This document shows, piece after piece, positions 8,819 through 64,000 of a stretch of 64,000 nt of DNA (position 1 is its first letter; each line of letters begins with the position of its first letter). The stretch is from Chlorokybus atmophyticus. Taxonomy: Eukaryota; Plantae; Mesostigma and Chlorokybus algae. The notes under the pieces are model-generated. The model was not told where the DNA came from, searched no databases, and saw only the letters and a list, made by a program, of their open reading frames with translations. Location of the stretch: the NCBI GenBank assembly GCA_009103225.1, contig RHPI01001259.1, positions 62,001-126,000 of the forward strand, read 5' to 3'. Position numbers and translations under genes: made by a program.

Positions 8819-8827
8819 AAACCCTAA
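8819..8827 (+). promoter_or_regulatory. Telo-box AAACCCTAA upstream of RPL14
   Basis: Exact motif about 230 bp upstream of the RPL14 ATG. Telo-boxes are established elements of plant ribosomal-protein promoters. Confidence 0.55.
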
Positions 8828-26507: not shown

Positions 26508-29063
26508 ATGGAGAGCTGGAGGCGGAGGCGGAGGCGACGGTGGGGGGAGGGGCGGCCTGGGATGTCATTGGTGTTGGGGTTGGTGGTCGTTGGGTTGTTG
26601 TTGGCTCTGGAAGGGGCGGAGGGGCAGTCCACATCCTCCGCCGACGCCGGATCCGGCAACTTCTTTGGCATGGAGACCAGGGCCTTTGGTGATGAAATGA
26701 GGCAAGAACGACCACGTTGCAATTTTTGAATCCATTATGTATTGCTTCTGAGTTGTATTGGGTTTTACTTATGATAGTTTTAGTATTACACAACTCAACA
26801 TCACTAATAAGACACGCTACCGGTAGTGCTTGTTGGGCAGGCTGCATTAACACATTCATCCTGCTACTGTCTAGGCTACACAATGGGAAGCACAACAACA
26901 ATCACCACTGAGTACTTCTACACGCTGCTAGCAGGACATGATTGACTGTTAGACACTGCGAAAGCATCATCACACCATCTTCATACATACACAAACTCAA
27001 CACGTAGCAGTGTATCAGCCAAGCACACAGTCACTCCTCCACAGATGCATCATTGCCACCACCATCACTAGCACCAAACACACCACAACAACAACATAAA
27101 CAGCTCCACACAGAGCCTTCGTGATGAATCTGGGTGGTGACGGTACGGAGCGTGTGGACATGACTCCCGAGGGCATCCAGCCTCGTCAGTCTCATCTCGG
27201 TCCCGTTCCCTTCTCCTCCGTGCCGTACGCCTTCTCGTCGCTCAACTACATCACCGGGATGCTCTACACGTACGTGCCGTCCGAACGGGACGACGCGGAC
27301 CCACTCGCCAATCCGTTCCATGTCGTGGAGCTGCTGACGGGAAACCAGGTGGGTGTGTGTGTTTGCGTGTGTGTGTGCACGTGTGTTGGCACTTATACAT
27401 GAGTGCACATGCACTGTGTGTGGCTGGTGTGTGTGCGTACATGCATGCACGCATGTTCTATGTGGGTATGGAGTGTGGGTTTGGGGCGCATGCATGCACA
27501 CGCATTCACGTGTGCGGGCTCGTGTGCACACAGGCGCACACGCACAAGCGCACACACTCATTCGCACCCAACCACCAAGTCACACACACACGTGCAGACA
27601 CGCGAACGCAGGCACAAGCACACAACACACGCACACACTCACACGCAAGCACGCACGCGCACGCACGCACGCACGCACGCACGCCACCACACAACACACA
27701 TACCACTTGTTTCATCCCCTCAGGTCGACGCTCCTCTCCTCCCTTACGCCCCTTTCTGTCTCGAATACGACCTCCTCAGCGAGTCCCTTCTCGCCATCGT
27801 CGCCGGCGCCGACCCGCGCGACTCCACTTGGCTCAGTCTCGTGGCTTTCAATCTCACAACTGGTGAAGTGATGGGCCCGCAATACACATACGAGGGGTAC
27901 ACAACATTGGCATACGGGGCAGCCACGTTCGATTTTCTCAACCAGACCTTCTGGGCGATATTGAGTAATCCGGCGGAGTCAACAGCGTACCCGACACGAC
28001 TGTTTGGAGTGCAGAGATACACGAAGGACTTTACCATACAGTACATCCCTGTGCCAGGTTTGGACACAACAGACATGCATGAGCACATGTGGCTGTGCGT
28101 GCATGTGTGTGCATGACTGTTGTAACCTCACCGTGTGTACCAACACGTGAATCCACACGCACACGCACGCACACACGCACGCATAAGTGCATGCATAGCA
28201 CATGTGCATGCGCTAAAAGCCACACACGCACATCTCTTCAGGTAGCAAAGACCTTCGCGTCTCCAGCTACGACGTCGTGTTAGGCAGCGTGGTTTGGCGA
28301 TACGACTGGCCTTTACAGATCCAACAAATCACCGGCATGAAGTTTGCTCCCGCACCCGAAGCTCAGGACTCGCGCGGCGTGTACACGCCGGGGGACCCCG
28401 CGCTGAAGACCATCCACGTTGTGGCGCACGTCAAGAGCGCGGGGAGTAGTATACTCAACTCACTCTGCTGGACAAAGCCGTGTAGTTCTAGTATCAATAC
28501 ATCCGATGCGCCAACGTACACGTTGGAGCAAAGGATGTGTACGTGTCGAGCCGCAGTGGTCATGTTGGATATCGACTACACGTCCACATACACGCAGCCG
28601 CAAACACTCAACTTCGAGGTGATGCGATATCTGGACGATCTGTCGTTACTCAAGCCGTCGTCACGAATATCGGCTCTGCTCTCGGCGAATTCGGCTCAGT
28701 CGGATATCAATCCCGGCAAGTTGTTTTTTCTTGACGGGGCGCCCGATGCGTATCCAACAAATGCACTCGTGCTCGACACGTTTGGGACGGGGGGGCAGAC
28801 GGCACAACTGCCAAACACACCCAACATTATACAGCCGGGAAGCGGGGCGTATCAGATGGTGGAGAGGAATCCCGTGCAGACGGGGTATTTGGAGCAACTG
28901 TACTTCACGGGACAGTACCCGGAAGCCATCAGGTGGGTGGGACTGTGGGTGGGAACACATGTGTGTGTGTGTGTGTGTGCGCGCGCGCGCATGCATGTGT
29001 AAGTGTGCGTACAAGCATGTGGGGTGTTCACTCACGTGCGTGTGTGCATGCGTGCTCTTGTTC

Positions 29064-29095
<32 letters not shown>

Positions 29096-32000
29096 TCCTG
29101 CGCGTGCGCACACATGCGCATGTATCATGTGCAGTTGTTGTTGCGTTGCTCATGGTCATCATGTGTGCTCATCTCTGCAGGCCGCTGGCTGCGAAGATTT
29201 ACCCGATGCCCACATTCGCATCCAAGTCGTACATGGAGGGCAACGGCGTCGTGCGCGGAGTTGGCACGCTGTTGGTACATTGTCATTTGCGCCATGCATG
29301 AGCGAGAAACAATGCCAAACAACAAGCAACACACAACACAACGTGCATCATGTTGGCAGGCTACTGCGGGCGACTCCACGTCACTCATAACCATCGTCGC
29401 CGTTAACGTCTTCGGCATGACCCAACCCCCGAGCGCAGCCACGGCAAGCATGAAACAGCGTATACATCATTCCAAAAAACATGTCGCGCACGCATGACAC
29501 ACACACCTACACATACGCGCAAGCGTGCATGCACGTGCGCGCGCACAAACCCACATGCGCACATGCACGCGCACGCATCCGAGAACAGACGCGCGCGCGC
29601 ACCCACACACACACGCACGCACGCGCACCCACCCACCACCAACTCCTTGTGTCAAGCAGGACAACTTCACCGTCACCATCACGGGTCCCGGTTTCCCCCC
29701 CAACAACGTCGCCTCTTTCCCCGTCGGCCCCTCCCTCTTAGGTCCCGTTGGCCCCGACAACTTCTCCCCCTCCGACAACGTGCTCCCCCACACCGACCAA
29801 CAAACACAATACCGTTACGTGGTCGGCCCAACATACATTAGCTCTAGTGCGGGGAGGTACATGGCCAGTTTCAGTGTGGATGCGGCGGGGAATTACAGCG
29901 TGGAGGTCACGAGTAAGGGGGCGTTGCCGGGGGTAGCGGTCGGGGCGGCGGTGTACGGGAGCCCGTATAAGATGGTGGTAGGGGCGGGACCGGCGGCGGC
30001 ACAGTACAGCACGGCGGTCATTGTGAGTTGTGTGTGTGTGTATATGTGTGTGTGCGTGTGTGTTGTGGGGGGACACGTATCAATGATATTATCACCTCAG
30101 GAACATGCTAAGACACAGCATGTTCCTGAGGTGTAGGCATGTTGTGTGTATGCACGCGTGGCCACGCGATGCGTGAGCTTGTTGGGATGCGTACGTAACG
30201 TGTGTACACGTTGAGGCGTGTACACATTTTATGGGCACCTGTCAACATTCTCCGCTCGCGCTTTGGGTTGTGTCGCACGTGTTGAGCCCACCTGTCAACA
30301 CATCTTCCTAACATGTGGTGTGTTTTGTGTGGCAGTACGACGGTGCCGGCAACGCTGTGTTGTTGACCTCAGCCGGGGCCACCTACACGCCCTTCTCCGC
30401 AAGCTACTGGTCCGGTGATGGCGTGGCGGTCGCCAGTGTGAACCGCGCGAACAAGTATGTGGACATCCTCGGGAACAACAACCCGAGCGCCGAGCAGTAC
30501 AGCGACATCGTGTATGCCGCCAACGACAAGGCTGATGCTGATGTTGGCATTGCGGCCTCAACTGCCAGCAGCATCAGCTTCAACGGTAAAGTTGTTGTGG
30601 TGTTGAGCGTGTGTGCTACATGACGTCTGTGCACACGCACACGTGTGCGCGCGTGCGCGCGTGCGTGTCTGCGTATTTGTACTTGTGCTCACACACACAC
30701 ACATCCCTCATCCCGCGCAGCCAGCGTTGGCCGCGTGTCCACTTTCTACATCGAATCCCGCGACCAGTTCGGCAATCGTCGTTCTTCCGGCGGCGACCCT
30801 TTATCCATCACCATCAAGGGCGTGACCTACATCTCTTGTTCTCTCCCGTTGGACCCGACCCAACCCAACTCGCGCACGCAGCCGCAGGGACAGACGCCGT
30901 ACTGTGAAATCAGTGATGAGGGAACGGGGAGGTATAGCGTGAGGTTTTTCATTACCAAGAGGAGCTTCACGCAACCCGTGTATCTGGTGACGCCGACGAT
31001 GTATAATCAGCCGATGTATGGGAACCCGCCGTACCCGCTGTTTGTGAATCAGGTAGGTTGTTGTGCTCGTTAATGATGATGACGATATTGTTGTTGTGTT
31101 GATACAACAACCACAAGTGGTGGTGGTTGTTGTAGCACCACAACAAGTTGTCGTTGCTGTTGTTGTTGTTGTTGATGGTGATGATGATGACAATATTGTT
31201 GCTGTGGTGATACAACAACCACAACAAGTTCTCCTTCAGGGTGTTACCGAGCCCGGTCTCTGCGTCGCCGTAGGCGACGGTTTATCCTCTTGCATCTCCG
31301 GCGTGTTGTCCATCTTCACAATCCAAGCTCAGGACCAGTTTGGCAACAAGAACTCCCTCGGCGGCGACCCACTCTATGTTGAAGTCACCGACAGCACGGG
31401 GACACGCGCCAACAGCGGGTCCACTATAAGTGCCGGTGCAGACGAGGTGCAGAGTATACTACAAGTGATACAACTTGGCGGGGGGCCACAGGCTTTACCC
31501 AATATTGGCACAACGCGTAGGCGTGTGTTGTTGGGTTTGACACAACAACAACAACAACCCAACATGGCGATTGGTGCCCGCGTGTATGATACAAACGATG
31601 GGAAGTACACGGTGATCTACTGGATGTCTGTTGTTGGTCAGGGTGTAATCAATACCACGATCAACAATCAGCCTATTGCGGGGTCTCCTTTCCATGTTGT
31701 TGTGGTCCCGTCCCACACGGACCCGCAGAATTGCGTGGCTTACGGGCCCGGCACGCGCGGCGCGTTCACGGCGGGGACACAGTTGCAAAGCGTCACGCTG
31801 CAGTTGCGTGATAGTGCGGGGAACAACATGAGCCAGGCGGAAGCCATATATGCGGCCACGCCGCCCGCGTTGCTCGTGGCGTTCACCATGCCCGTGAGGG
31901 TGAGTGCGTGTGGGTTGTTGTGTTGAAAATGTGAGTGGTGGTGTTGGGTTGTGGGCTTGATGTTGGGTGATGTGTGATGAGTATAGGTGATTGTGGATCC

Positions 32001-35000
32001 GGCGGGCGTGCCACACACGATCACGGATGGACCCATATCGCCGCTGTACAACCTCAACACAGGGGTGAGATGACGTGTATTACAGATTGCTGTACTCGTC
32101 TTGTCGCAATGCATGACACATGCGCACACGTGCACGCATACGAGCGCATAGTAGCATACACACATGAACGCGCATATGCACACACGGTTGCACACACAGG
32201 CTCTCTCACACGCGCTTGCACAAGCACTTGTGCACACCCGCACAAGCGCATGCGCGCGCACACGCACACACACGCGCATGCAGTTGCTTGCGAGTGCACA
32301 CACCCACCCACACACAACTCATGCTGACACGTTGCACACGACAGAGCGTGAGCCTCCCCACCACCGTCACCAACCTCCCTTCCGACAAGGGCAAGTTCCT
32401 CATCTCCTACTCCACGCCTCTCGCGGGCGCATACTCTCTCTCTGTCCAACTCCTTCGACGCACCGACAGCCAGCTGCAGTTCATACGGTTCGTGTGTTGG
32501 TTGTGCGAGAACACAACAACACAACAAGTTGTTGTTGTTGACATGTGGTGCATGCATCAGAGGTGCGGATGGACTCTATGGAAGCAATGGCCCGGGCAAC
32601 TCGCCGTTCGTAGTGACTGTGCTGCCAGCAGACTTCAGCGTGGCACAAACTTCCGTGAGAGACACGCACACATGCATGCACACTCACACATGAACACGCA
32701 GTCAGCATGCACGCACACATAAACACATGCATGCGCACGCGCGCGCGCACATCTCACTCGCGTGTGCACGCAGATGTACGCGTGGCACCTTAGTGATAGC
32801 GGTTACGTCCTCCTGTCCACATCGCAAGGTGTGACACACGCCCTCGCGGACGCCGAGGGCATCATCGACATCGTGCCTCTCACCTCTCTATCCGCCAACG
32901 TGGGCGATCAAGGCAGCTTCTTCATCCAACGCAGAGACAAAGTACAAAAGTTAGCGCCATTCTGTTGGTTATGTTGGTTTGTTGTGTCGGGTGACCCAAC
33001 ATGTTGATGTGTGTATGTGTGTATGATGTGCTTTTCCCGTCACACGCAGTTCTCCAACCTTCTCACTGATGCGGGCAACGCTTCCTTTGCGGTGTCGATG
33101 TCGGCGATGGTTAACAGACAGCTTGTGACGATCATCCCCACGGTCACGTATGTGGTTGGCAGCGGGGCGTACAAGGTGGCGTACATCGTGCAGGCGGTAA
33201 GTTGCTGGTGAGAGCTGGGTTGTGTGGTGGATGTGTTGATGTGGGGTCTGATTTGTGTTATGAACGTGCAGGCGGGTGTGTACAAAGTGCGTATCACGTT
33301 TGGAAGCCAGCAACTTCTGGATGGCAATGGCAATCCATACAACCTGACAGTGAGTTACTCTGTGTGTGTGTGCGTGCGTGCACGCGTGTGCACACACGTC
33401 CGTGTTATGTTTGTGAGCCACATACGAATGTGTGTATGCAACGCGATCTCACACACGCATGCAACACAGGTTACTCCTGGCGCGACTTGGGCTGGCTCAG
33501 TCACGTCCTTCGGCCCCGGTTTGCGTGGTGGCGTGATCAACAAGGAGTCTTCTTTCACCATCGTTGCTCGCGATCGCTACGGCAACCCTCAGGGCGACAC
33601 GCAGTCTGGCGACACGCAAAAACAAGAAGCCCTCCTTTACGACGTGCAGCTACTGTTGTGTCAGGACGGCACGCCCTCTTCGTGCACACCCGGGAGTGAT
33701 ATCTACGGGACCGTCACGCCCGATATCACCACGCCAGGACAGTATATCGCCAAGTTTGTACCAACGATCCCCGACACGACGTATCTGATGTGGTTGAGGT
33801 ACGATAATCAGCTCGTGCAAGGGTTGACAGACACGGGAAGCACGTTTCCGATCAGCGTGCAGTTTTTGTCAACACTCGGGGCGGCACAAGAGGCCAACAC
33901 TGTAGTGGACCCGCCGTACTATGGTATGTTGTTGCCTTCAACTAGTAGTTTGCGTGCTCACGCACGCACATGCGCACAACTTGTGTGTGTGAGAATGTGC
34001 GTCACATGTGCGCGCAGGCACGCGCGCACGTACGTGCGTGTGTGCGTGCACGTGCGTGTCTGTGTACATGCGCTTCTGTCTTGTTGTTGTTGGGCGCATT
34101 AACATACCATTTGGGCAGGTGGGACTGTTGGTGAGGCTCAATTGATAACCGTGCGTGCGCGTAACCGGCAGAATATGGACCTGGAAGACGGAGGTATGTG
34201 CACATATGATGCACATGTGCGCATATGTTGGGTTATGCGAGGTCATGTGGTAATGTGTGTACATATACCGACACAGGGTCTTTGGAGGAGCTCAACGTGC
34301 AGATGCAGCTGTTGCAAGACGGTGTGGAGACATTCAAAGTCCCGACAGACGGCTCGTGGCTGTCTCTCGCAAGTGGTGATGTTGTCGACGGTGCGGATGG
34401 CACGTACCTCATCACCTTCCCGCCATATGTGGACGCCAACACCAGCACACTTAAGTCCCTCACCGTAGCCGGCACGTATCGCGTGTCGATCACCGCACGA
34501 TCACCCACCCACTCTACTGCAATCAACATCGGCACGGCCTCCAAGACCGCATCAACACCTTTTGATGTGGTGTTGGCTCCCGACACAACTTCCGCAACAA
34601 CTTCCGAGCTTGTGGAAGGTCTCAAACCCAGCCAATCACTGGTCCCGGGACAGGCGTTGACTGGCATCGCGGGTGACCTGAGGACCTTCTGGGTCCGGGG
34701 TCGGGATCGGTTTGGGAACGCTCAGACTTGGGACGTGTTTCAGGGCGCCGATAACTTTAGTGTGCTTGTTGTGTCGGAGGTGGTGGGCAACGTGTCCACG
34801 TTTGCGCTGCCTGTGACGGATAACCGCGACGGCACGTACCAGGCGCAGTGCGTGCTCACGCAGGCTGGGGTGTATAACGTCAACGCGTGGCTGCTACCAA
34901 GCGGGGAAACAACACCACTTGCGTTGCTGTCGCAACCCGTCACCGTGACTATCACACCTGGTAAGGCTTGTGTGTGTGCGTGTGCGTGTGTGGGTGTGTG

Positions 35001-38000
35001 CGCATACGTGCATGCGCACTTGCATGTGGGGCGTGCATGCACAGCCACACTCTCTACAACTGAACCCAACATATGTCCTTTCAGGGCCTCTTGTGGTTGA
35101 GAAGTGTGCCGTGGGTGGTTCCGCTGCTTGGATGAACCCACCCATAGGCTCCCCGTCTTCCTTCTACATCCAGGAGATGGACGCCTACGGCAACATGCGC
35201 ACGGGTCAAGCCACACTCCGCCGTACTCTCACAAACACCCCTCTCGAGTTCATCGCACTCTTCCAACACACAACCAACACCTCCTACTCCTACACGGCCC
35301 TCAGCGTGTACACGTTGTCGGGCCGCCACTTCATCACGTACAACACGGGTGGGCCCTTAAGCAAAGGTGGCAACTACGCTCTAACAATAACCTCCGACGG
35401 CTCATCTTTACAAGGTGGATATGTTGTGTCGGTCGCCCCGGGACCAATATACCTACCACTTTGCGTGGCTTCGGGGCGAGGCGTGGCACGCGCCAACTAT
35501 CCGCCCGTTGGCACGGAGAAAGCCGGCATAGTTGCCAACGTGACGGTTCAAGCAACAGATCAGTACGGTAATGCGCTTGTGCGTGGCGGGGATGCACTCG
35601 CAGCGAGGTTGTATCCGGTTGGGGCGGGATCGGCCTTTGATGCGGTCGTGGTTGATAACGAGGATGGCACGTATGCGGCGCAGTATACGGGAGTGAAGTC
35701 GGGGGACTATCTGTTGCAGATCTCACTCGGAGCACAGGTGGGTGGGTGTGTACGTGTGTGTGCGCGTGGGTGTGTGCGTGCTTGCTAGTTATACCTTGAT
35801 ACCTGTCTGTCTCCGTGCATGAGTGCGCGCGAGCACACACACACATGCATGCATGCACACATCCACGCATGCGCAAGCACACATGCGCATCCATGCGCGC
35901 GCGCGCGCGCACACACACACACACCTGCGTGCATGTGCGTGCGCGTGTGCACATTTTTTACCAAAAGCGCTGACTGTGCCATGGTCTGATGCGCGCAACC
36001 CTTTGTCTCAGGTCTTGCCAACATCACGCTACGTGCCCTTACCTGGCTCAACTCTCCTCGCTAGCGTGCCACCTCAACTCCCCGGCGTGATCGTCCGCAT
36101 CATGCCGGGCCAACTCTCCTCCTCCAACACGTACGCCGTGAGCGCCATGTTGGCGGGGGCACGCACGCTCATTGCGGGAAGCGCACTCACCTTCACTGTT
36201 GTTGCACGCGACACGTTCAAACAAAACAAGACAGATACGGATGCAGATAGTTACCTCAACGCCAACATTGTTTACAATGTCAACAACACGTACCCAGGGA
36301 GAGATGTTGTGTCGGATACGACGTGGACACTTAATACAGATGGGCTGTATCAGAAGGAGTTGCCGCTCACGCAACGGGTCGGCACGGCCGAGTACGTGTA
36401 CACGCAAGAGAGTGCTGACGGAGGCGTGGCGTTGTACATAGCGGGCAACTATACGCTCAACGTCCACATGGTGCACCTCCTTATCAACACGACGACCAAC
36501 GTCACGAGCGTGGTGGATGTGGTACATGTTGGGTCCGGGGATGTTACATCACCCTACAACATTACCATCAACCCCGGGCCGTCGGACCCAACAACAACGG
36601 GGTTTCTGCCGCAGACGTGTGGACCCGTAGCGTGGACGGGAACCAACATGTTGTACCCGTTCGGGGAGTGTGTCAACAGCACGGCGAGTAAAAGCCTCGC
36701 GAGTGTGAGTACACAAAGTGTCGTGGAAGATGCGTGGTTCCTTGCCACGGCGGGAAAGATGACCACGCTCACGGTGCAGCTGTATGACCTGTATGAAAAT
36801 GTGCAGGTACAGAGATGTGTGTGTGCGTGTGTGTGTGTGTGTGTGTGCGTGTGCGAGTACGGGTTGGTGGCTGGTGTGTATATGCGTGCGTATGTGCGTG
36901 CGTGTGTGTGCGCAGACGCACAAACCTGCGCGTGTGTAGTGACTCGCATGTTGAAAAACGGACTTCCTTTGCAGATAGCTAACGACGTGACGGGTAGGAT
37001 GAACGACGTGGTTGTGGTCACTATCGGCGAGAGCGTCACCACAAAACGTACGTTCTTGTTACTGTTGCCTCCTGACTCGACACTGTCTGAGTACTCAAGA
37101 TGAGTATGTTTGCGCAGCGTGTCCAGATGCAGCGTTGGCACGCGAGACCGATACGTGCACGGCCGTTAGTCCACAGTACCCTTTGCCCCCTGACTACGTT
37201 GGTATGAACCTCACGGCGTACAACGCGTACACCCTCAGCGCACCCAACTCTTTCACCCTCACGTTCACGATCACAACCCAACTATACGCATCCCTTCGCC
37301 CTTACCTCCTCACGCTCACACTCAACAGCCTCTCCATCAAAAGCTCACCCGCCAACATTGTGATACAACCCGGCCCGACACATCCCAACATGTGCAGCGC
37401 GCAAGGCGCAGGTCTCAACCGCACACGTGTCGGCGCGTCCACATATTTCACTGTTACAGCGAGGGATGCGTACGGCAACGTGCAGTTTAATGTGGGGGAA
37501 GCCAACAACTTTGCCATCAACATGGTGTTGTTGCTGGGCACGAATGCGCTGGGTGGGCAGATTGTTGTGAAGGGGTGTTACCCGTTCACGCCGGAGTGCG
37601 CGTTTGGTATCGACTATGTGGGTGTTGGGTACGGTGTGTACAACGCGTCGTATGTGACGCAAAACGCCGGGAGATACACGATATACATCACCCACAATGG
37701 CATCCTCATCGGCAACGGCAACAACAACAATACCACAAACACAACAACAACAACAACAACAACATACACAACAACAGTGTACCCGGGTGTCACGAGTGCG
37801 GGTCAATGCACGGCTTACGGGCCGGGTCTCACCGGCGGCGTGTCCAACATAGCCACGGGTTTCATCATCCAAGCGCGTGATAGGTATGGCAGTCCTCAGG
37901 TGTGGTTGAGTGAGAGTGAGAGCGAGGACACGTTCGTCGCGGTGGTGTACCAACCCGCCTCCTCGACCAACGGGAGTCCACTCAAGGTGGACACGCCAGT

Positions 38001-41000
38001 CGACAACCAGGATGGCACGTACTATGTTGGGTACACGCCGCTCGTGGCAGGCACACACTCGGTCATTGTCACCCTGAACGATGTGCCCATACAGGTCAGC
38101 ACGTGTGTTTTTGCGTGTGCGTGTGTCCGTGATGTTGACATGAGATGTATGCGATGTGCAGGGGAGTCCGTTCACGGTTGTGGTGAGACCCACCGATGGC
38201 GATATTGTCCCTCGCGCGTGCGTGCTCGTGGACAATGTTGGCTCGCAGCTGCTGGGCTTGCCACCTTACGCCGCAGGCACCAACAACACCATACGCGTGC
38301 AGGTAAGAAGCACACACATGTGGACAGGCACACACACGCACACGCGCACGCACCCACCCACCCACCCACCCACCCGCCCGCACACATGTGCACACACACA
38401 CGCGCAGACGCGCACGCGCGCACACGCACATGCACGCATTAACGTCGGGTCCCACACAGGCGATGACGTTGGTTGGTGTGCAAGCTGCCCCGAAGCTCTT
38501 TGGTGGCGACAGCGTAATCGCTCGTTTGACCGGCCCTTCCAGTACAAACACAACATTACCCGTTACCGACAACGCCGACGGCACTTACTCCTTCACACTA
38601 GACTCTCTATCCCTCGCCGGCACATACCGCGTGTTCGTGCAAGCATGCAAGGGAACAACATTACCATCATCCTGTATCTACATCAACATACGCTCCTCGC
38701 CGTTTGGACTCGCCATAACTCCAGCAAGCACGGACCCAACGTCTTCGTACGTGGTGGAGCTGGCGAACCCGACGGCACGCGTCACGCGCGTGGCGGGAGG
38801 CGTGGCCACGTTCACGGTGCAGGCAAAGGATAGGTTCGGGAATGCGCAGCAGTACTCGGCAACGGCGGCGCCGACGGTGTTCGACATCGGGGTCAATAGC
38901 ACAACCGTACCCGTCAAGTTTACACAAGTACGTGATGTGGGCGAGTGTTTTACTCTTTGTTCGTGACCAGCATAGCCTCCTTTTGCTGTGATACACACAT
39001 TTTCGCACACAACCATGCATGCGTGCACACGAACACGCGCACTTGCACGCTCATGCACACTCTATCTTTGACACACGCATGCGCACGCGCACATATACTC
39101 TTTCTCCCACACACATCCACATGTGCGTACGCACACACATGCACGCATACACACATACGCACATTTACAAGTACCCACACACACACAGGTGCCCGCCGCC
39201 ACAGGGAGCACTGGCCTCGCCTCCGGCACCTACAGCATAACCGACCAGTTCGACGGCACGTGGCGCCTCTCCCTTAACGCCACCTCCGCCCAACTCTACT
39301 CCCTCTCCATCACACTGAACAACTCCCCCTTGCGCGGCAGCCCTTACGCATTAACAATAGTCCCCTCATCCACCAACATACCCAACAGCATCATAATTGG
39401 GTCCACTCCCCTCTTCCAACCCTCGGCCGCGGGCGCACAGACCCAACTATACATCCAAGCGCGCGACGTGTGGGGCAACTATCTCACCTCAGGTGGAACC
39501 AACTTCAAGGTCCAACTCGACATGTTGTCTCAACCGAGTCAGGCGGGGACGGGTTCTCTCACAGCGTTGGCGGGTGTGGTGTGTCCTTACCCGAGCGCGA
39601 GTTGTGTTTACGGTGCCAATGAAGATGGGGTGTTCCAATTCGCCGCGGACGGCAAACAGATCACGAGTCAGGTGAGGGTGAGTGATGTGGGGGACGGGAC
39701 GTATGCGGTGAGTTATATGAGTCAGTTGAGTGGGGAGGCCGCGTTGTCGCTGTATGCGCCGCAAGGAGCGGCGCAAGTGGAGTATGCGGTGTGCGCAACG
39801 ACGGATGCCAACGCAATCTGCTCACAGGTATACACATACGAGGATACAAGCATGCACACAGTCACACACGCACAAGCACATGAGTGCGTGTGTTTGAATG
39901 CATTGCGCGCGTGCGCACATACCCACCCACACACGCATCACAATCCTATCACTGCTTACTGCCACTCTAACACACATCCCCACACACGCAGCTTGCGTAT
40001 GTGAGCACGGGCGGCCTCTTAACCGTCTCCTTCTCCCCCGGCGACGTGTACGCTCCCGAGTCTTTCGCCACTTCCCGTTCCAACACTCTCTCCCTCGCTC
40101 TCGCGGGTTCCCTCAACACCTTCACCATCTCGGCTTTCGACTTCTACCGCAACCCCCAGAACAAGGCCGGGTATCTATTTGATGTTGGGTTGACGCGGGT
40201 GGGAGACGGGAGACGAGTGTTGGGAGCGAGCGGGTATGTGAATGGAGTGTATGTGGGGAGTTATGTGGTGACCGTGGTGGGGGAGTATACGATGACGGTC
40301 AGGAGGAACTATCTGAATATCAACGGGAGCCCGTTTAGGGGACTGGTCGTCGTGCCGGGTAAGTGTGTGTGCGTGTGCGTGGGCGTGTGCGTGGGCGTGT
40401 GCGTGGGCGTGGGCGTGGGCGTGGGCGTGGGCGTGGGCATGGGCGTGAGCGTGTGCATGTGCATGTTCGCGCTCGTGTGTGTGTGTGTGTGCGTGCGTGA
40501 AATGAGATGCTTCCTACTGTGTTGTTGGCTGCTTATGTGTGCGTGCGTGTGGTGTGCGTGCAGGTGGCACCAATGGCACGCATTGCCGGCTCAACCACAC
40601 GATGGCCACGATGCCGGACCCGACAACTGGTCAGCTAGTGCGCACCTTTGTCGCCGTGGCTGGCGCCGTCACCAACTTTACTGTCACAACAGCAGACTCG
40701 TATGGCAATCTCAGGACAAGCGGTGAGTGTGATTGACACACACGTACACACAAACATGCACACACGCACACGCACATGCACGCTCACGCACTCGCTCATG
40801 CGCGCGCGCGCGCTCACACGTACACACACACACACACACACTTGTGCAGGTGACGAGGTGATTGTGATCACGGTTGGCACGCTCTATGAGGGCTCTACCT
40901 ACGACCACAAGGACGGCGTGTACACGGGTCAATACGCCGTGCCAACATCTGGCACTTACGACCTCCGCGTGCAAGTGAACCAGGTCGACGTGACCCAACC

Positions 41001-44000
41001 CACAGAACTCTTCGCGCCGTACAACACCGTGCCAGGCGGGTACTTTCCGCTTATAGTTGTCGCGGGCCCAACATACGCTTACACGTCTGAAGCGACGGGT
41101 GCCGGCTTGATCGGTACAGATGCGGGTGAACCCACACTTATTACAGTGAGAGCGAGAGACAAGTTCCTCAACAACAAGCTTGTTGGCGGGGACGCGTTTG
41201 TGGCAACGTTTGTTGGACCCGTTGGCGTGTATGTTGTGTCGAGTGAAGACAACGGGGACGGGTCTTATGCGATAGTGTACACGCTACCCGTGACGGGGTT
41301 GTACAACTTGTCGATAACGGATGGAGTGGGTGTTAATGTGGCCAACAGTCCCTTCGCACAGAGCGTGAGAGTGTCTCCCGCGGGGATATCACTCAATAGT
41401 ACGCTTGTTGTTGTGTCGAGCGCGCCCGTGACTGCGGGACAGAGCGTCACGTTGGGTGTGAACCTGGTGGACACGTTCGGCAACCCTGTCGAGGATGGAG
41501 ATAAAGTGAACTTTGGTGTTGTTGTGTCGGCAAGCGCCAACAGGCGTGTGACCCCACGCCAAGTGTTGGCTTCGGGCTCTTCTTTGCTCCAGCAACAGAC
41601 TTTTTCCAACAACAACGCGAGTAGTAACGGCGCACTCCCAACATATGTTGGGTACAACCTCACGTACGTCGCGAGTTGGGGTGTCGTTCACGCCGTCAGC
41701 ATGACTTATCACGGGCGACACATTGCTGGGAGTCCCATGATGTTGTCCGTGACGGCGGGTCCAACAAGTGCCAACAAGACCTACGCGACGGGTCTCGGCG
41801 TAACCCGCGGGATTGTCAATACGTTGGGTTCGTTGCGCATACGTGCTGTGGACGCGTACGGCAACGCGCGTCCCAACGGCGGGGACACATTTGTTGTTAC
41901 ACTTCTACAACCTGATGGGAAGGACCTACGCGCGGACGTGTATGATCTTGGCAATGGCGTGTACGTGGCCAACTACACGTACACGCAGCGGGGAAACCAC
42001 ACGATACTCATCAACCTCATGCTGCCCGTGCTCACGCCAGCGGGGTTTTACATCAAGCAAGCGTATGCTATAGCGGGAAGCCCGTACCGCGCCAACGTGA
42101 TACGTGTACTCGACAACAACATGACACCCACTGCCAACTACACATACGCGTACGGGGATGGCCTCAACTATGCCATCGCGGGGGTGAGAACAACATTCTT
42201 CGTGCAAAGTGTGGCTCAATCCGTCACAGCTGAGGTCCTCAACAACAACGGGGTGCTCGACACAACAATTATGAACAACGTATCTTTGACTATCGGCGGC
42301 TTCTCCACTCACTTCTCCGCATCGATCCGCCTCAACAACAACAACAACATCATGTTGGACGCAAATGTGTCGGACAACAAAGACGGCTCCTACTCTATCT
42401 CCTACCAAACCAACATGAGTGGTTGGTACGGTGTTGTTGTGTTGTACGAAGGTGTTGCTATGAAAGGGAGTCCTTTCTCCCTCTTTGTTTTCGCGGCCGA
42501 CACATCCATCGACACGTCCACATTGACCCACATGTCCAATGCTATGGCGGGCGTGACCCAACATGTTGGCGTGAAGTCCAAAGACGCGTACGGCAACGCC
42601 CAATCGGGATCGAAAAGTGTACCCGCAAAGACATTCCAACTTGTGGATGATAGTTGGGAGGCATATGTGACATATGTGCAAGGCACTGTGCTGAGCAAAC
42701 AGGCGCAAAAGGACCTGAGTGGGTCTGTTGTGATGACCAACGCACAGGACGGGACCTTTACGTTGGGTTTCTTACCCACGGTGACCGGGTTGTACAGCGT
42801 GTCGGTTACGTTGGCGCGAACACCCGCGGCAACATACACAACCAATGTCGTGGCAGCCAACATAGCTGCTCAATACACTATACTGTTGGGTGAGAACGAT
42901 GCGAGTATGGAAGACGCGTTTCACGCCGCACGCGCGTTGCAAGTGTTTGCATTGGTTGTGGCCGCATACGATGCGTATGGCAATAAGATTAATGTTGGGG
43001 GTGAGGGTGGCCGCGTGTACGTGCAGTACCAGAGCGCAGACGTGCCGGACGTGATGTATACCAACATTACCGACACCAACAACGGCAACTACAGCGCCTC
43101 ATTCACGGTGGAGAGCACCGGCGTGTACACGCTGAGCGCGTACGTCAACAACGTCCTCGTGACCAATGGCAACCCGCTGGCAACTTACACGGCGAGAGGT
43201 GCCATCGCAACCGTGGCAACGGATCCCAACATGTGCAAGATTGTTGGGTCTTCTGCCACGTCTGGCGTGGCGGGAACACCCGCCACGTTCCACATACAGG
43301 CCAGAGACTCGGTGGACCGCATCAACGCGGGTGGCGGGGACGTGTACAAAGTGGTGATATCCCCACAACAACCCACCAACGAGTATGGCATTGTGCTAAA
43401 GACATACGAGTACATTGCGCTGGACGTGGCTCAAGGCAACACGACGCAAGGCTTGTATCGAGTCGACTACACTATAGCCGACTTCGGCTCCTACACCGTG
43501 AGCGTGTATCTCCACACGTCCACATACATATTGTTGTCCGCAACCCCACTTGACCTTCTTGTTGGTAAGGCTGCTGCACCCGCCTCGTGCATCGCCCTCA
43601 CGCCTCCTTGCACCAACGAGGCCATCTTCACCGACAGTGCCGTCGGCATCACCCTCACCTTCAACACTCCCACCGACCGCGCGGGTTTCAACGGCGTGGA
43701 GTCTTGCGCCAACCTGTTCGACGCCGCGTCGATGTTGTTCTTGGGGAAGGGGCCGCTGTGTAGTTGGGTCACGGATACCGTCGTGCAGGTGGCGGTCGGG
43801 TACGGGGCAACGATACAAGAGTTGTGGCAACTTGTGTTCTTGCCAGATGCGATATTGACAAAGCAAAGGAATTCGGGGTACCTGGCGGGGTCGGTCAGCG
43901 TGGAGAGGCCAGTCAATCCGCCACACCCTACTGCAGTTGTGCAGGTGAGAGGTGGTTGATGTCTGCCTTTGGTTTTATGACAACTACTCTTCCTGCGAAC

Positions 44001-47000
44001 AGATAGCTTATTTCCTACATGCGCGCATACTCATACTCATACGCATGCACGTGCACACACACACACACACATGCGCACACACAGGCAGGTGTGCGCGCTC
44101 GCACGCACATACACATGCAGGCATCTGCATGTGAGCGTTCGTGGGACGGACATAACCACACGCCCGCACGCATGTTATGCAGGCACATGCACACGTACAA
44201 GCGCTCACTTGCGCGCACACGCATGCACACACCCATCCACCCACCCAAACACATTCCAGGCCCCCACTACTCTCGGTTCCTGCGACGACTTCACGTTGGA
44301 CGCCTCCGGCTCCTACGGCACCGCGGGTCGCGCTTTGTCCTACGCTTACGGCGTTCGTCCCAACGTCCCCAACGAGCCCGCCATCTCCCGCTTCTTATCC
44401 GACACGCCCACATCCTCCTCCTCCGTCACATTACCCTCACAACTCCTCGCCGTCGACACAACATACACCTTCATGTTGTCCGTGCAGAACTTCCTCGGGG
44501 AAAGTGGGTTGGTGTATCACAGCGTGGTGAGGAGGGATTACCCGCTACCTAATGTGATCATCGAGGGACCCGCCGTACAACGTGTGTATAGGAGTCAAGA
44601 CGTGCGTGTTTATGCGACTGTGGCTCTATCGGCGTGTTTTGACTCGGCTCCAGATATGTTGTTTGTGTGGACTTTGGCTTCGGGGTCGCCTTTCTTCGAG
44701 TTGGACGAGCAGACGAGTAAGACACGCACACTCTTCATCCCCGCCAACACGTTGTCGGCCGGGTTGACCTATGGACTGACCATCCATGGTGAAGTTGTGT
44801 CGGACCCGACGCGCCTATACAACGAGGCTACTGCGTTGGTGGTTGTGCTCGTGTCGCCGATAGTTGTCAACGTGCAGGCCGCGATGGTTGTGTCGGCGGG
44901 TGATGTGGTCATGTTGGATGCATCTACATCAAACGATCCCGATGACCAAAACCCAACGTATCCCGTCCCGCCTTTCGGCCCGTTCTTCTTCAAGTGGGCG
45001 TGTGTGCGTGCCAACGATAGTGGCCCGTGCTTCGTGGACACGTTGGGGTTGTTGTATCCAGACCCGTTGGAGAATGTACTCACGTTGGCACCCGGCACGT
45101 TGCCAGCCGGGTCGGATTATTTGTTTACTATCACAGCGAGTAAAGAGCCACTCTATGACGGGAATGGCCCCATACCTGGACGCACGCAAAATGTCGTGAA
45201 GAGGATCACGTGAGTGCGTGTATGTGCGCGCGCGCGTGCGTGTGCATGCGTGTGCACGTGTATGCATGTGTGTGTGTGTACGTGTGTGTGTGCTTGTGTC
45301 GCATACCAACATGTTGTTATTATTGTGATGTGTGCAGTGTGTTGGGACCCGAGCAGCTTCAGTCCAACCGGAGGCGGCGGCTGCTGCAGGCGACATCCAA
45401 TGTGGTTCCCGTCGTGTGGATCGACCCCGTTGCACCAATCGTCAACGCTAACGATCGCCTCGCAATACGGGTGAGCGTGTGTTTGTAATTGAGGCAGAGG
45501 CAGATAGGGTGTGTGACTATCGGTTGCATGTACACAAGCACACCTGCACACACTCGCAAGCACCCATATTACAGATGATATTACTGATGGCCTGACTCAC
45601 TAACTTGTGCAAAAGGGTGGCATCATGAACGATACCGTCTACGGCGCGAGGACAACCTACTACTGGGAGGTTGTATCTGGCCGTCTCGACCTCGACTCCT
45701 ACCCTTTCAAGGTTGCCACTCTCCGCAACAACTCCCACTTAGTCATCCTTCCCGGCGCGCTTTCAGCAGGACAGACCTACTTGCTGCGTCTGAACGCGAC
45801 GAATGAAGACTCGGGACTCACGGGGTATAACGAAGTGGGGTTCGTGGCCAATGGGGCACCCACGTCGGGAGTGTGCGCGGCCACGCCGCTTGTGGGGTTT
45901 GCGAGTCAGACGACGTTCACGCTAGCGTGCTCGGTAGGACTCTGCTCCCCTGCTTGCGTGCATGTGTGTACGTGTGCGCGCGTTCGCTCATGTGCACGTG
46001 CACGTGTTGTTGTACGTGTGCATCCCTGTATGTGTGTGCACATGTGTGCGTGCATGTGTGCCTGGTCATGTGCGCATGCTCGTGCGTGTGCATGTGCGTG
46101 TGTTGTCAGGTGATGATAGCGATTTGTGTGTTTCAGGCTTGGGAGGACGACGACAACCAGGCCGTTCAGTACGAGTGGCGCTACACCGACCCCACCTACA
46201 ACTGGGAGATCCCTCTCGTCCCCCGCTCCAAGACCAACCAAGCATCCGTCAAGCTCCCTCCCGTCACCGTGAGCAACAACTCCTACACACTCACCCTCGT
46301 CGCTTACATCGTAGATAGATTCGACGCCAAGTCACGAGTAGAACTCAACGTGACAGCATACATGCCAACACTGTCGAGCAACAACAACAACAACGACACA
46401 GACACATTCAGCGTCACAGACTATGTGGAGAACCTCCTCACATCCAATGACTCCCTCCCTTACGCCCTCGGCACAGGCAACATCATCCAGATAGTCAACA
46501 TAGCCAAGTCCTCTTCACGTCTCCACAACTTGGCTGCTTCACAACGTGCTTCACGCCCCCAACGTGTTGCTCCCGCGGGTGCGCCTCTCACTCCTCAAGA
46601 AGAAGCGCAGGCGAGACAGGATGAAGAGGACGTGGCGAATGCGTGTCGGCACGCGGGAGTGATGTTGGGAGCCTTGCAGAGGGTGATTGATAGCTTGAGA
46701 ATGAGTGGCGTGGAGATGAGTCTGGTGGGGGATGCGTATAGAGAAGCGGCGGCGATGGGGGAGTGCTACTCGGTGAATGATACGGACAACACGCAGAGAG
46801 CGGTGAGTGTAGATAGTGTGCGCGTGGGTGTTGTTCACGCACACGCACGCGTATGCACTGATGCTGGACATGAGTGGGCACTTGTGGACTTGAGCAAGTC
46901 ACGAGTGTGCTCCAACTTCAGTGTGCGCGTGCATGTGCGCGTGCGCATGTGTGCATGCGTGCGTGTGCGTGTGCGCCTGGGGCACGCCCGCATGTGTGTA

Positions 47001-47419: not shown

Positions 47420-50400
47420 GCTGTGGTGGTGGTAGTGACATGGTTGTTGGTTGGCTTGGTTGAAGCGATGTGTTCTGTTTCAGGTTCCGGCTGGTACTGT
47501 GCCGTCCAACGGATCGGAGATGCAGGTGAGAGATGCATGCTTCTGTCGTGGTGTTGGGAGTGTCTTTGCGTGGAAGGAGCGTGTGTTGTGCTAGCGTGAA
47601 TGTTGATGTGGTGGTGTTGGTGCAGGTTATTGCTGCGGTTAGTAATAGCAACCCGTACGCGGGCAGCAACGACTCCACGCCCATCACGGGTGGCGTGCTC
47701 ACCTTCAACATGCGCGCCAAAGGTACACTTGGGGAGCATGTGCACCCTCAACCACATGCATACCATACGATATACGCTTCAACTCATGTTCACCCACACA
47801 CACGCAGGCGCTGACACCAACCTCGAGGTATCCAACCTCACCACCCCAATTCAAATCCGCATCCCCGTTAGCGTTGGCGGCACGTCTTGTCGCTCCACCC
47901 GCGGAGGTTGTCGTTACTGGGATGAGAATGTTGGCTCCTGGTCCACATCCGGTCTGCGCGAGTTGTATCGCACCAAGGACTACGTGATATGTGAGACGGT
48001 CCACCTCACGTCGTTCGGCGTGTCGGCCGATGACTTGGTCCCGCAGTTCAACGTGATTAACCCGATTGGACAAGCGGACCTGTTCACGCAGATTAGTCTG
48101 AGTAATAGCCTGGCGTTCTTTGTATTAGGGGGGATTTATGCCACGTTTGCCGTGGCAAATTGGTTGGGGTATAGGAAGGATAGGAGAGATAGACTAAGAG
48201 CACGCCTTGAGGATAAACTCGGGACACTTGACTACAGATTGAAACAGGAGGACGACAAGAAGGTGAGTGTGTTTGTGCGTGTGTGCGCGTGTGTGTATGT
48301 GTGCGTGTGCACGCGCGCACACGCACACACACGCGCGCTTGTGTATCTGTGTGCGTGCGTGTGTGCTCGACACAGCTTTCAACCTGTTATCCCTTTTTGT
48401 TTATGTGTAGGTTCAGGACAACAACACCATCACTAAGGAGGGTCTTGCGAAGCCCGCCAAGGCCGTCAACGGTGTTGACATGAAGAAGGGTGACGACCCT
48501 CCCTCCACCCTCGCGGGTAAGATCGGTCTCGCCCTCATGTCCGAGCACGCCGTCGGTACAATCATGAGCGTGAAGCCGACCGACAAGTACACGCGTCCCC
48601 AGCGTCTGATGGTGTTGATGTGTCTCGTGTTGGGACACATCGCCACCACGGCGGTGTTCTTCGGCATCAACCCGAGCAACATCGCGGCCAAAGTGATAGT
48701 GGGCATCGCCGCCGCGATGCTCATGCTACCGAGCAAAGTGGTACTGCAGTTCGTGTTCCAAAAGTCAACGTATGTGGCCCCACCTATGAAGACCAAAGCA
48801 CGAACCAACATACGACGATCGCACCGACACCGACACGACAACAACGTGTCCAACATGTCCATGACCAGCATGTCCAACACGAACGGGCACAACAATGGAG
48901 AGGAAGTTGAACAAAATGGCCACAAGAAGCAATGGCCTGTTCTTCATTCCATTGCCGACGTTGCCGACCATTTGTTACACAACAACAACAGCAAGCCGGC
49001 GACGCCGATGTTGGGTGATGCGGGTGATGGCGTGGGGTCGGGTGATGTGGCTGAGAATGGTGTGATGGATGTAAAGTTGAGCTTCAATGAAGAAGGCGTG
49101 CCGCTACCACCGACGGCACCGACATTGCTGAGACCGCAGAGAGCGTCGAGGTTCTCGCGAATGAGCACCATCGCCACAGGCCCGCAAGCAGGTAAGTGCA
49201 CACTGGAACACGTCTACACTCTCACACTCACACTCACACTCACACTCACACTCACACTCACACTCATGCACGCGCACGCGCACGTGTGCACACACGTGCA
49301 CATACACGCAGACACTCTCATGCACAGGTACATGCACGTGCACATGCACGTGCACGTGCACACGTGCGCACATACGCATGCGTGTCACTCAAGCGTGGTT
49401 GTCCACACGTGACCTTGTGCGTATACATGGGCATGTGCGCACGTGCGTGTGTTCACGCACGCACGCACGCACGCGTTGATATGTATACATAACACAATGA
49501 TACTTGTGTCACTAGCTGGCCTCGTCCCCCCTCCCCTGCCTCCCAAACCCCCGACCCCTCCCGCTCCTTCCTCCGGCGGCGTCCCACCGCGCATCCGTCC
49601 CCGCCGACGCGTCAGCAACAAGGTCACCGTCATCGCCGCCGCGCCTGTGCTCGACGTCCTGGGCGCGCCCAAAGACATCCTACCGCCATTCGCTGCTGCG
49701 GCGGGGGGAGGCGGTGCGACGGCACTGTTCCCGGTGCCACCACCGCCACCACCGGAGGTGTGTGCGTGTGACTGTGTGTGTCCGTGCGCGTGCATGCATG
49801 AGAGCGTACGTGCGTGCGTCTCTGTCTGCGCGCGCGTGGCATCGTGCTCACACTGGATGTGTGCGCGTGCGTCCTTGCATCTGCAAGCCACACAGCTCCA
49901 TTTATGTAGAGCCCCCCCTGTTACCCAACATCATCAACGCTGCAACAACCGTCGTGTGCAGGGTGCTCCCACTCGCCCTCGCCGCTTGCGTCCCGCCCCT
50001 CCCGCCCAAGCCTCCAGCCGTTTGCTCTCCATGGTGCAGTCGGCGCAGCAGGCGTTCGGTCTTGCGTTACCAACATTGACACCGTTTGCGCCGCTCCCGC
50101 CACCTCCCGCGGACGCGCCGCCACCAGCGAGACCAGCCATGAGTAAAGCGAGGAGAGCCATGCTGATGGCGTCGAGGAGTAACTCGGTGAGTGCGCTTGG
50201 TATGCGCACGTGAGTGTGCATGGGTGCTTGCACATTGATGTCTGTGTGTGCATGTTGTCACGGGCATGCGTGTGCGTGTGCACACCATACAGATACACGC
50301 ACTTGTGCGCACATGCACTTGTACGCACGTGTTTGTACAGTTGCACTTGCACAACGTGTGCAACCATCCAACTGACGATAGTTCTCACCACATGTGCAGC

Positions 50401-51623
50401 GTATAGCACCGGACCCGTTCCTCACTACAGCGTGGGCCAACGTGTCCCCTTCATCCAACAAGTTGGCCACACAACCACCTCCTCCCCCACCCCCTCCCCC
50501 ACCTAGCAACGGCATCATGCGTCCACGCCGTAGACGACCGGAAAGCCTACAACCCAGCACGCAAACAAGCACAACATCCACCCCGCGCGCACACACGCCC
50601 ACAAGTGAATCAGGAGGTAGCGAGTACGCCGTTGCTTTCGCGCAGGCCGCAGCGAGGCTTCGTCGTCCAACAACAAAGCGTGGTAGCGCAGCCACATTGT
50701 TCGCACGCCAACAGAACATCACCAACATGGTGATGCGCGAGCACGGGTTGAGCGAGTCCACACTCCCTTCGCGCTCCGGCACCCCATCCAACATGTTGTT
50801 CGATAGGAGTGAGACGCCACTCTACATACCCTCGGCGATAGAGAACGTTGTGCGTCGGATACAACGTGTGTGGAGAAGACACCTACTCGTGCGTGCACGC
50901 CACCAACGCAAATCTGCCACGCGGATACAAGCAGCCGTGCGTGGGTTTCTTGCACGCAAACACGTGAAAGAGGAGAGAGAGGCTCTCGCTAAAGGAAGAC
51001 CCGTGTTGGGTTTGTGGTGGATGTCCGCACACGAACACCGCAGTGAGGTGAAGAGTGCGGGAAGTTCCAACAACAACTCACGTGCGCCCACCCCGGCACA
51101 ACATTACCTCGACGCCCTCGCTGCTAAGGAAGAAGTGCTCTCACGTTGGGCGCAGAGGGCAAAGGCTGCTGCCTCACAGACACACGAAGCACACATCCAC
51201 GCAGCTGAGACAGCAAACGAACCCTTTGCCGAGCGTAAGAGGGCGGGAGGAGCAGGTGGATGTGTGCGTGCAACACGACAACAACAACAGCGTGACAACG
51301 CTAAGAGACGACGCAAGCGCCAGGGCCTCCCACGTTGGTTCGTGTACTTCGCGTACGCGGGTGCGTTGGGTTTCTGCGCACTATGCTCCTACTTCATCAT
51401 GTTGTACGGGCTCGTGTTCGAGCCCAGCGTGGCACGCGCGTGGCTGCTATCGGCACTTCTATCACTTGTGTTGGAAATGTTTCTACAAGACCCGGCGAAG
51501 ATAGCCGCACTCGCGCTACTGAAAGACCACTTCAAGGCGTGGTTACATGGAGTCAAAGATAGGAAGAATGCCAAGAGGAGGAATAAGTATCGCGTGCATG
51601 CCACGGGAGCACTGGCGGGATGA
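26508..51623 (+). CDS. Giant polycystin-1/REJ-like type I membrane protein: signal peptide, ~25 filamin-type Ig repeats, REJ-type region, GPS motif, 5 TM helices, Pro-rich loop with IQ motifs (dozens of exons)
   Basis: Signal peptide MSLVLGLVVVGLLLALEGAEG (ATG at 26508 or 26562). Recurring filamin signatures include (Q/T)ARD.(Y/F)GN, D..DG.Y and GSPF. The REJ-like segment runs about 43600-46500 (CDDFTLDASGSYG, VVMLDASTSNDPDD, YWEVVSG, APTSGVC). The GPS motif is at 47909-48016, TMs are at about 48108, 48600, 48690, 51330 and 51450, and the stop is at 51621-51623. Exons are joined by GT-AG introns. Confidence 0.88.
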
Positions 51624-52648
51624 GAGAGTGAGAAAGAGTGCACTTGTGTGTTTGCTGGTGTAATTAGGACCTAGAGCACAGATGCAAGGGCAGACATCTT
51701 TACTGGTTGAGAGTTTTTGTAGGCCAAAGGCAAGTTGTGCAGAGTCTCCATAGCATAGGTATTCTTTCCAGTGACTTCTGACTGCGTATGACTGGAGTAT
51801 TGAGAAATTCTTGTAGTGGCAAGTGAAATTTAATTCGAATTGGTGAGGGTACTGCAAGGCTGCAGTATATTCTTGAACGTTGTTGTTTCCCATGTCATAG
51901 TGCTTTGCTGGTAGCTGCTGATAGGGCTTAATGCCGGTAGCCCCATAGGTGACTGTAGGTACGACAACATACGTCACACATGACATGATGATGTTCACCC
52001 AACAGGCTGCAAGAAGCCGTAAAAGGGGTTGCGCATGTGCTTGGCGTACGAGTAACATGAGCACATGCGCGCCCCACACGTGCCTTGCACATGCATGACA
52101 ACCACTTCTCACGCATGCTCGCGCTCTTGTTTTCTCTAACTCCCCCTCAACAAGGAAGCAGAAACCGCGAAAAAGTCCAAGTGCCGATACCTACTTCCAA
52201 AGGTACCAACCACATAGCATCAGGGCCTCATCAAGTAGCAGATTTGTATAGCATTTGCTCACCAAGCATACACCCTAAGGCATTGCACCCATCACAAGGA
52301 AGGAATACTTGCTTTGCTTCTACCGACCTGTGCACATTTGTCAGAATGCAGAGCTTGTTCAATCAGTACGCACTTGCAAACTACTGGGACACTTGCGGTG
52401 ACAATACCAACCAATTGACATTGTCATGTTGCCTACCTAGAAATGCAAGCGAGCTAAGACAGCACCAACTATGCTAACGACATTTTCACTACGTGGCTCG
52501 CAACTAACAGATTACACCTGTCACTGCTGCTACCTACCATACAACCTCCCCGAGCGAACGCACCATAGCACTCTCAATTCTGATCAACTCAAGAAATAGG
52601 AAGGTACAATATGCTACAAACAAACGCCAATACTTTCAGTCAGTCAAC

Positions 52649-60419: not shown

Positions 60420-64000
<3,581 letters not shown>

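Follow-up and report, generated by a model that had tools for sequence, protein, structure and literature searches.

The window analysed here is a 64,000-nucleotide (nt) stretch of the streptophyte alga Chlorokybus atmophyticus (assembly GCA_009103225.1, contig RHPI01001259.1, positions 62,001 to 126,000), which is eukaryotic in character, with a G+C content of ~55% and introns rich in TG/CA. The segment at 48080-51623 on its forward (+) strand is predicted to form the membrane and cytoplasmic C-terminal end of one giant gene of ~25 kb (~26.5-51.6 kb). From its N-terminus, the encoded receptor comprises a putative signal peptide and dozens of immunoglobulin (Ig) repeats of filamin type, followed by a REJ domain, a GAIN/GPS module with the cleavage triad HL|T, and five transmembrane helices (TM1-TM5) of polycystin-1 (PC1) type. 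On the strength of its domain content, its homology, its fold as modelled by proxy, the lack of both PLAT and channel, and its conservation among green algae, the gene is best explained as encoding an adhesion-type receptor of the polycystin-1/REJ family, with five membrane passes and without PLAT, the TOP domain or the channel half, which would signal strain through IQ and proline motifs; we put the probability of this reading at about 0.85. An initial annotation of the same DNA had described the segment as a stand-alone five-helix module that might need a PKD2-type partner encoded elsewhere, and the peptides it quoted were all located on the + strand, at the coordinates listed below. The features of the gene are given below; profile A1 comprises four sequences of the TM4-5 hairpin and profile A2 five sequences of TM2-3.

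26562..26624, + strand: possible start, a Met followed by the hydrophobic, signal-peptide-like stretch MSLVLGLVVVGLLLALEGAEG (read from the sequence).
27130..43956, + strand: exons of the ectodomain, rich in Ig repeats of filamin/ABP280 type (Pfam PF00630; tblastn to residues 1-4307 of the Mesostigma orthologue, P0013).
44260..46556, + strand: REJ domain over three exon blocks within 44071-47057 (Pfam PF02010; tblastn to P0013 residues 4309-5049).
47888..48022, + strand: GPS motif of the GAIN domain (Pfam PF01825, E 2.4e-8).
48008..48106, + strand: stalk from the cleavage site to TM1, a candidate tethered peptide (read from the sequence).
48107..48172, + strand: TM1, SLAFFVLGGIYATFAVANWLGY (family alignment; the orthologue model aligns with PC1 from residue 3071).
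48173..48262, + strand: conserved basic juxtamembrane helix, YRKDRRDRLRARLEDKLGTLD, reaching the exon end and kept in all family members.
48263..48410, + strand: TG/CA-rich intron of 148 nt, GTGAGT...GTAG; read-through meets a stop at 48434-48436.
48540..48668, + strand: PC1-type pre-TM2 motif (H...S/I...P...Y/F-TRxQR) and TM2 (profile A2; hhalign).
48693..48758, + strand: TM3 (profile A2, hhalign and family alignment).
48759..49191, + strand: low-complexity His/Asn/Ser-rich segment after TM3, at the position that PLAT takes in relatives; no Pfam match.
49516-49757 and 49896-50186, + strand: two Pro-rich loop exons with polyproline and RPRRR motifs (splice sites placed by eye).
50400..51623, + strand: last exon, with Pro-rich loop, tandem IQ motifs, TM4, TM5, basic tail and stop (100% identical in the protein model P0001).
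50847..50966, + strand: tandem IQ motifs of calmodulin-binding type, IQ1 at 50847-50903 and IQ2 at 50916-50966 (Pfam PF00612, E 2.2e-7).
51327..51419, + strand: TM4, LPRWFVYFAY...LYGLVF (profile A1).
51438..51521, + strand: TM5, AWLLSALLS...QDPAK (profile A1; hhalign of A1 against A4).
51659..51663, + strand: TGTAA, the polyadenylation signal of green algae and a possible one here, 36 nt past the stop (a weak hint).

The exon structure downstream of TM1 is described by four canonical GT..AG introns that keep the frame (48263-48410, 49192-49515, 49758-49895 and 50187-50399; 148, 324, 138 and 213 nt), read by eye. The last exon is 100% identical over 50400-51620 to the Joint Genome Institute (JGI) protein model Chlat1 Chrsp308S04739 (P0001), which uses the identical 50186|50400 junction and the identical stop, a TGA at 51621-51623 that follows a basic tail of 33 residues. 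The same model confirms the frame of the Pro-rich exon at 49896-50186, whose exact acceptor at 49896 is uncertain. By tblastn, the 6512-residue protein Mv02023 of Mesostigma viride (P0013) is colinear with the window from 27130 (residue 1) to 51620 (residue 6475), its alignment beginning only downstream of the candidate start at 26562. This colinearity, together with the filamin, REJ and GPS segments upstream, means that the five helices are not the stand-alone module once proposed and appear instead to be the C-terminal anchor of a giant protein; the proposed beginning of that module, 48080, falls inside the stalk that leads from the GPS cleavage site to TM1.

Searches with the exons were run individually, each exon as a separate query. 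The filamin family PF00630 is matched in six of ten stretches (best E 1.3e-58), with repeats throughout 31-44 kb, and weak matches to the GEX2 N-terminal Ig domain also occur in the ectodomain exons. The three matches to PF02010 (E 9.1e-21, 1e-12 and 7.8e-6) cover positions 1-443 of the REJ profile in order. In the GPS, the cleavage triad HL|T is intact at 48002-48010, 32 residues upstream of TM1, and HL|T or HL|S is kept in the GPS of relatives. The stalk bears a motif, SADD..P.FN..NP...ADLF, that is conserved in the family alignment.

The membrane core is truly of polycystin-1 type in sequence and predicted fold, with a likeness that goes far beyond chance, and the TM1 helix and the PKD1-type TM2-TM3 and TM4-TM5 pairs described in the initial annotation are all present. 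The peptide SEHAVGTIM...KYTRPQRL lies at 48540-48608 and TM2 at 48606-48668. Searched against 177,635 PDB sequences, profile A1 has PC1 as its sole match (6a70_B 532-597, gap-free over 66 residues, E 0.087), and profile A2 has TM2-3 of the same protein at the top (6a70_B 237-332, E 0.021). Among 1.84 billion representative proteins, A1 finds 333 matches at E ≤ 1e-3, which include PKD1L2 of Diadema (E 1.8e-8), PKDREJ of Protopterus and Echinops, and PKD1L2 of Mya and Glandiceps; the named animal PKD1L2/PKDREJ matches range from E 1.8e-8 to 3e-6. In these animal matches, Pfam places REJ, GPS and PLAT before the hairpin and Polycystin_dom and PKD_channel after it, which is the position of TM4-5. 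The pre-TM2 motif H..(W).S...P...(F/Y)TRxQR is common to all PKD1-like matches, and hhalign of TM2-3 against 16 PKD1-like sequences yields a probability of 98% (E 1.9e-13). For TM4-5 (A1 against A4), the hhalign probability of 99.6% is partly circular because the compared sequences were found with A1.

The fold was modelled with AlphaFold2 for the C-terminal 895 residues of the Mesostigma orthologue, using a 31-row alignment whose transmembrane columns were checked. In the five helices, most block-mean values of the predicted local distance difference test score (pLDDT) fall within 80-95, and the long loops are mostly disordered except for the helical IQ region; TM1 and the basic juxtamembrane helix form one long helix with block-mean values of 82-94 over most of its length. 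When the model was compared by VIA-align with 48,161 PDB representatives, the sole chain with a Z of at least 8 was PC1 8z6b_A (Z 14.0; root-mean-square deviation 4.6 Å over 181 residues), with model residues 30-873 lying on PC1 3071-3610, from TM1 to TM5, and the runner-up chain reached Z 7.0. In a second look, VIA-align gave PC1 9l0w_A a Z of 15.2. The kinship with PKD1 TM1-5 asserted earlier is thus borne out by structure prediction, and the five helices are predicted to pack like TM1-TM5 of PC1.

The same overall build as in the Chlorokybus protein is found in Mesostigma P0013, in CAG9463240.1 of Pedinophyceae sp. YPF-701 (P0018), in a Coleochaete scutata transcript (P0012) and in a marine metagenome gene pair (L002). 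This green-algal build runs from filamin repeats, REJ, GPS and TM1 through a short basic loop, TM2-3, a long Pro-rich loop, tandem IQ motifs and TM4-5 to the end of the protein. The channel-less, IQ-bearing PC1-type receptor is conserved in green algae, and in Chlorokybus and Mesostigma it also lacks PLAT. A search of the literature turned up no description of a PC1-type receptor in green algae, the term PKD does not occur in the paper on the Mesostigma and Chlorokybus genomes (PMC7027972), and the green-algal relatives are annotated as unnamed or hypothetical in their sources. The gene pair L002 occupies positions 1-13303 of a compact, intron-poor 53-kb contig. There, a 7613-residue filamin/GEX2-Ig/REJ open reading frame (ORF) ends 150 nt before a 1100-residue GPS-5TM-PLAT-IQ ORF, past which the next gene follows after 143 nt on the opposite strand; the two ORFs are probably one gene of ~8700 residues that is interrupted by a frameshift or a small intron.

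No match to PLAT (PF01477), Polycystin_dom (PF20519) or PKD_channel (PF08016) was found by Pfam in any exon, and four PLAT and two TOP+channel probes returned noise only when run by tblastn against the whole 64-kb window. Earlier claims that PLAT is absent, and that the protein stops after a short basic tail with neither a TOP domain nor S1-S6, are thereby upheld, the latter also by the Mesostigma orthologue and all other family members found, which end after TM5. The TM1-TM2 loop comprises ~70 residues with an intron of 148 nt and therefore leaves no room for a PLAT exon. A PLAT exon hidden elsewhere, which the initial annotation had named as a possible refutation, was likewise sought and rejected, all four introns being too short and tblastn being negative. 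Because the TOP domain and the six-helix TRP-like half are missing, the receptor itself cannot be a pore subunit, in agreement with the earlier statement that it could not form a channel alone.

Animal PC1-family proteins work with TRPP channels, and it might be supposed that the green-algal receptor regulates, as its partner, a PKD2/TRP-type channel encoded by another gene, so that what is a single protein in animal PC1 would work here as two; IQ motifs and calmodulin would suit Ca2+ feedback in such a pair. This arrangement is nonetheless unlikely. No channel gene lies beside the receptor gene in the window or in L002, and we know of no contact between TM1-5 of PC1 and polycystin-2 (PC2). 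The C-terminal coiled coil of PC1 binds PC2, and there is no room for such a coil in the 33-residue basic tail. In the animal complex, PC1 joins three PC2 subunits via its last six helices (TM6-11) and TOP domain (PMC13473692). With TM6-11, TOP and the coiled coil all absent from the Chlorokybus protein, every part of PC1 known to bind PKD2 is missing, so a PKD2 partner would be left without a known interface, and the suggestion that one may be needed finds no support.

It is very improbable that the protein is a full 11-TM polycystin-1 whose channel half was missed because a downstream exon went unrecognised, the assembly has a gap or the gene is split. The hairpin matches in the animal PC1 family do continue into Polycystin_dom and PKD_channel; here, however, the in-frame stop at 51621-51623 is common to the JGI model, and only ~1 kb of non-coding-looking DNA follows before a convergent LOG-like gene is reached. 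A downstream channel exon was rejected on these two grounds and on the negative result of the TOP+channel probes in the 64 kb. Relatives, including Mesostigma, pedinophyte and environmental members, end 9-80 residues after TM5 (P0002-4, P0007, P0013, P0017 and P0018), and in L002 the next gene stands only 143 nt away in the opposite orientation. Since the relatives end alike and the arrangement in L002 is compact, the absence of the channel half is, as far as these sequences tell, a trait of the family and not a truncated model.

Several points weigh against the receptor reading. The splice model draws on GT..AG signals and reading frame together with one JGI model and homologues, and the structure comparison used the Mesostigma orthologue as a proxy for the Chlorokybus protein. 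A middling Z can be reached by chance for helical bundles, and a Foldseek search with the 895-residue model gave nothing significant, with PC1 at rank 5. Taken singly, each of the two PDB profile matches is marginal (E 0.02 and 0.09), and single-sequence phmmer searches of exon B and the last exon against the PDB gave no PC1 match, so that profiles were needed. The phmmer, Foldseek and PDB profile results would also suit a purely compositional likeness of the two hairpins to PC1, in which hydrophobic helices carry a few motifs by chance and a REJ/GPS ectodomain has been joined to an anchor of unrelated origin, but this is scarcely credible and is ruled out by the A1 matches in the protein library, hhalign and VIA-align: among 177,635 sequences, two independent segments have one and the same protein as their sole or best match, correctly ordered and in register; E-values of 1e-8 to 1e-6 are reached against named PKD1L2/PKDREJ proteins among 1.84 billion; the pre-TM2 motif H..W/.S...P...FTRxQR is shared; the hhalign probability is 98%; and the structural match at Z 14 is unique and spans TM1-TM5.

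The position of PLAT within the family differs from what had been assumed. The initial annotation held that a short charged loop after TM1 replaces PLAT; the absence of the domain stands, and its location does not, for a short TM1-TM2 loop with the conserved pattern GYRKD.RDR..RL..K...LD is common to all green-algal family members, and PLAT follows TM3 in those relatives that possess it. In P0018, the TM2 motif is at 5912 and PLAT at 6003-6102; in P0017, the corresponding positions are 348 and 433-534; and in P0157, the GPS is at 2498-2536 and PLAT at 2749-2858. PLAT is absent in Chlorokybus, Mesostigma and P0007. Because PLAT follows TM3 in relatives, the likely site of its loss is the low-complexity segment at 48759-49191. 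A poorly resolved tree of the region from the IQ motifs to the hairpin places the PLAT-bearing rows basally, although one also falls within the 91/91 group to which Chlorokybus and Mesostigma belong, and the basal position only suggests loss rather than gain of PLAT. In animal members, PLAT precedes TM2 (in P0065, for instance, PLAT spans 299-401 and the TM2 motif is at 455), and its occurrence after TM3 in algae versus between TM1 and TM2 in animals suggests domain shuffling or an independent PLAT insertion.

The cytoplasmic loop between TM3 and TM4 comprises ~650 residues, and its tandem IQ motifs, which the initial annotation did not weigh, are the best clue to the output of the receptor. 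Both motifs at 50847-50966 are of the IQxxxRGxxxR type and are followed by a conserved GLWW.SAH motif at 51003-51038; IQ motifs also occur in P0007, P0013, P0017, P0018, P0122 and P0158. The loop further contains repeated polyproline and (M/V/I)RPRRR linear motifs at 49516-50531, clearest at 50475-50531, which are found as well in Mesostigma P0013, P0007 and P0004 and represent candidate docking motifs.

For the working of the receptor, we infer cleavage, ligand, calmodulin binding and signalling route as follows. The long ectodomain would bind, or be pulled by, an external partner such as the wall, a scale, the substrate or another cell, and would stay non-covalently tethered after GPS autoproteolysis. 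Strain on the ectodomain would be passed to the five-helix bundle, and calmodulin-type proteins bound to the IQ motifs, along with binders of the proline motifs, would read out the signal. On this view, the protein would act as a GPS-cleaved receptor for adhesion or mechanosensing. A possible role in cell-cell or cell-surface adhesion is hinted at by the filamin/GEX2-like ectodomain and by what REJ proteins do in sperm.

Among known systems, the animal polycystin-1 family (PKD1, PKD1L1-3 and PKDREJ, with sea-urchin REJ3) shares with the Chlorokybus protein the REJ domain, a GPS HL|T just before TM1, the TM2-3 motif H...S...P...FTRxQR, the hairpin LPxWF...LYG...WL.S...QP.K and the predicted TM1-5 packing. 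Unlike that family, the Chlorokybus protein lacks PLAT, TOP, the channel-like half formed by TM6-11 and the C-terminal coiled coil; it has an ectodomain of filamin repeats in contrast to the PKD, LRR and lectin modules of animals, and its TM3-TM4 loop carries tandem IQ and polyproline motifs. The sea-urchin SpREJ proteins of the PKD1 family combine REJ and GPS with 1-11 TM segments, PLAT being present in five of the ten and a channel domain in four (PMC1934368), so that a member without PLAT and channel has precedent. The truncated ones, SpREJ1, 2 and 7-10, differ in being animal proteins with lectin or PKD-repeat ectodomains, and no conserved five-TM core bearing IQ motifs is described in that paper (PMC1934368).

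Adhesion G-protein-coupled receptors (GPCRs) resemble the Chlorokybus protein in their large adhesive ectodomain and in the GAIN/GPS autoproteolysis site beside the first TM, and a similar logic of activation by a tethered stalk is plausible by analogy. Membership in this class was rejected, as the five helices are of PC1 type and do not form a seven-helix secretin-like bundle, no 7tm family is matched in Pfam, and the best structural match among these receptors, ADGRF1, reaches a Z of only 6.8 versus 14.0 for PC1. GAIN domains are known from protists (PMC3321182). A non-animal member of the REJ-GPS family, Esi0130_0068 of the brown alga Ectocarpus, can be set beside the Chlorokybus protein by description: it is a male-gamete-specific, multi-pass REJ and GPS protein of 1427 residues with 6-7 predicted TMs, a polycystin cation-channel match within the REJ region and no filamin repeats reported (PMC4700764). 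Other non-green REJ (+GPS) proteins, from Kipferlia bialata (P0088) and environmental sources (P0122 and P0158), end right after the PC1-type TM4-5 hairpin, and in P0122 and P0158 an IQ motif is also present and TM2 is separated from TM3 by a long Cys-rich loop; PC1-type cores without a channel may be widespread among protists.

The function of the first five helices of polycystin-1 is poorly understood, and in the solved PC1-PC2 complex the channel is built by the last six. The green-algal family keeps REJ, GAIN and TM1-5, with an IQ loop in place of the channel half, and therefore suggests that the five-helix bundle is itself a signalling unit; green algae offer this bundle in a form that can be tested without an attached channel. 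A polycystin-1-type receptor is thereby placed in both green branches, among streptophyte algae (Chlorokybus, Mesostigma and Coleochaete) and in a chlorophyte (Pedinophyceae). As a tentative possibility, and one that we hold to be less probable than its negation, the green-algal proteins may be autonomous, GAIN-coupled TM1-5 receptors read by calmodulin that preserve a pre-fusion state, before a five-TM receptor and a TRPP channel were joined into the 11-TM polycystin-1, with PLAT inserted independently.

The neighbouring DNA contains several further genes. The 3' end of the receptor gene is bounded by a convergent LOG or 'possible lysine decarboxylase' gene at 52652-53748 on the - strand, with a match to PF03641 at 52652-53299 (E 2.1e-35). 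Upstream of the receptor gene, a low-GC block at ~18000-22000 (G+C 0.39-0.40) contains, at 20916-21257 on the + strand, a fragment like the N-terminus of NADH dehydrogenase subunit 5 (PF00662 and PF00361), which may represent an insertion of organelle DNA into the nuclear contig; G+C is also low in a second block, at 58000-60000. On the + strand downstream, a Cid1/TUTase-type nucleotidyltransferase (PF22600 and PF03828) is encoded at 55623-57140, and the N-terminus of an SMC-family ATPase (PF02463) at 60514-64000.

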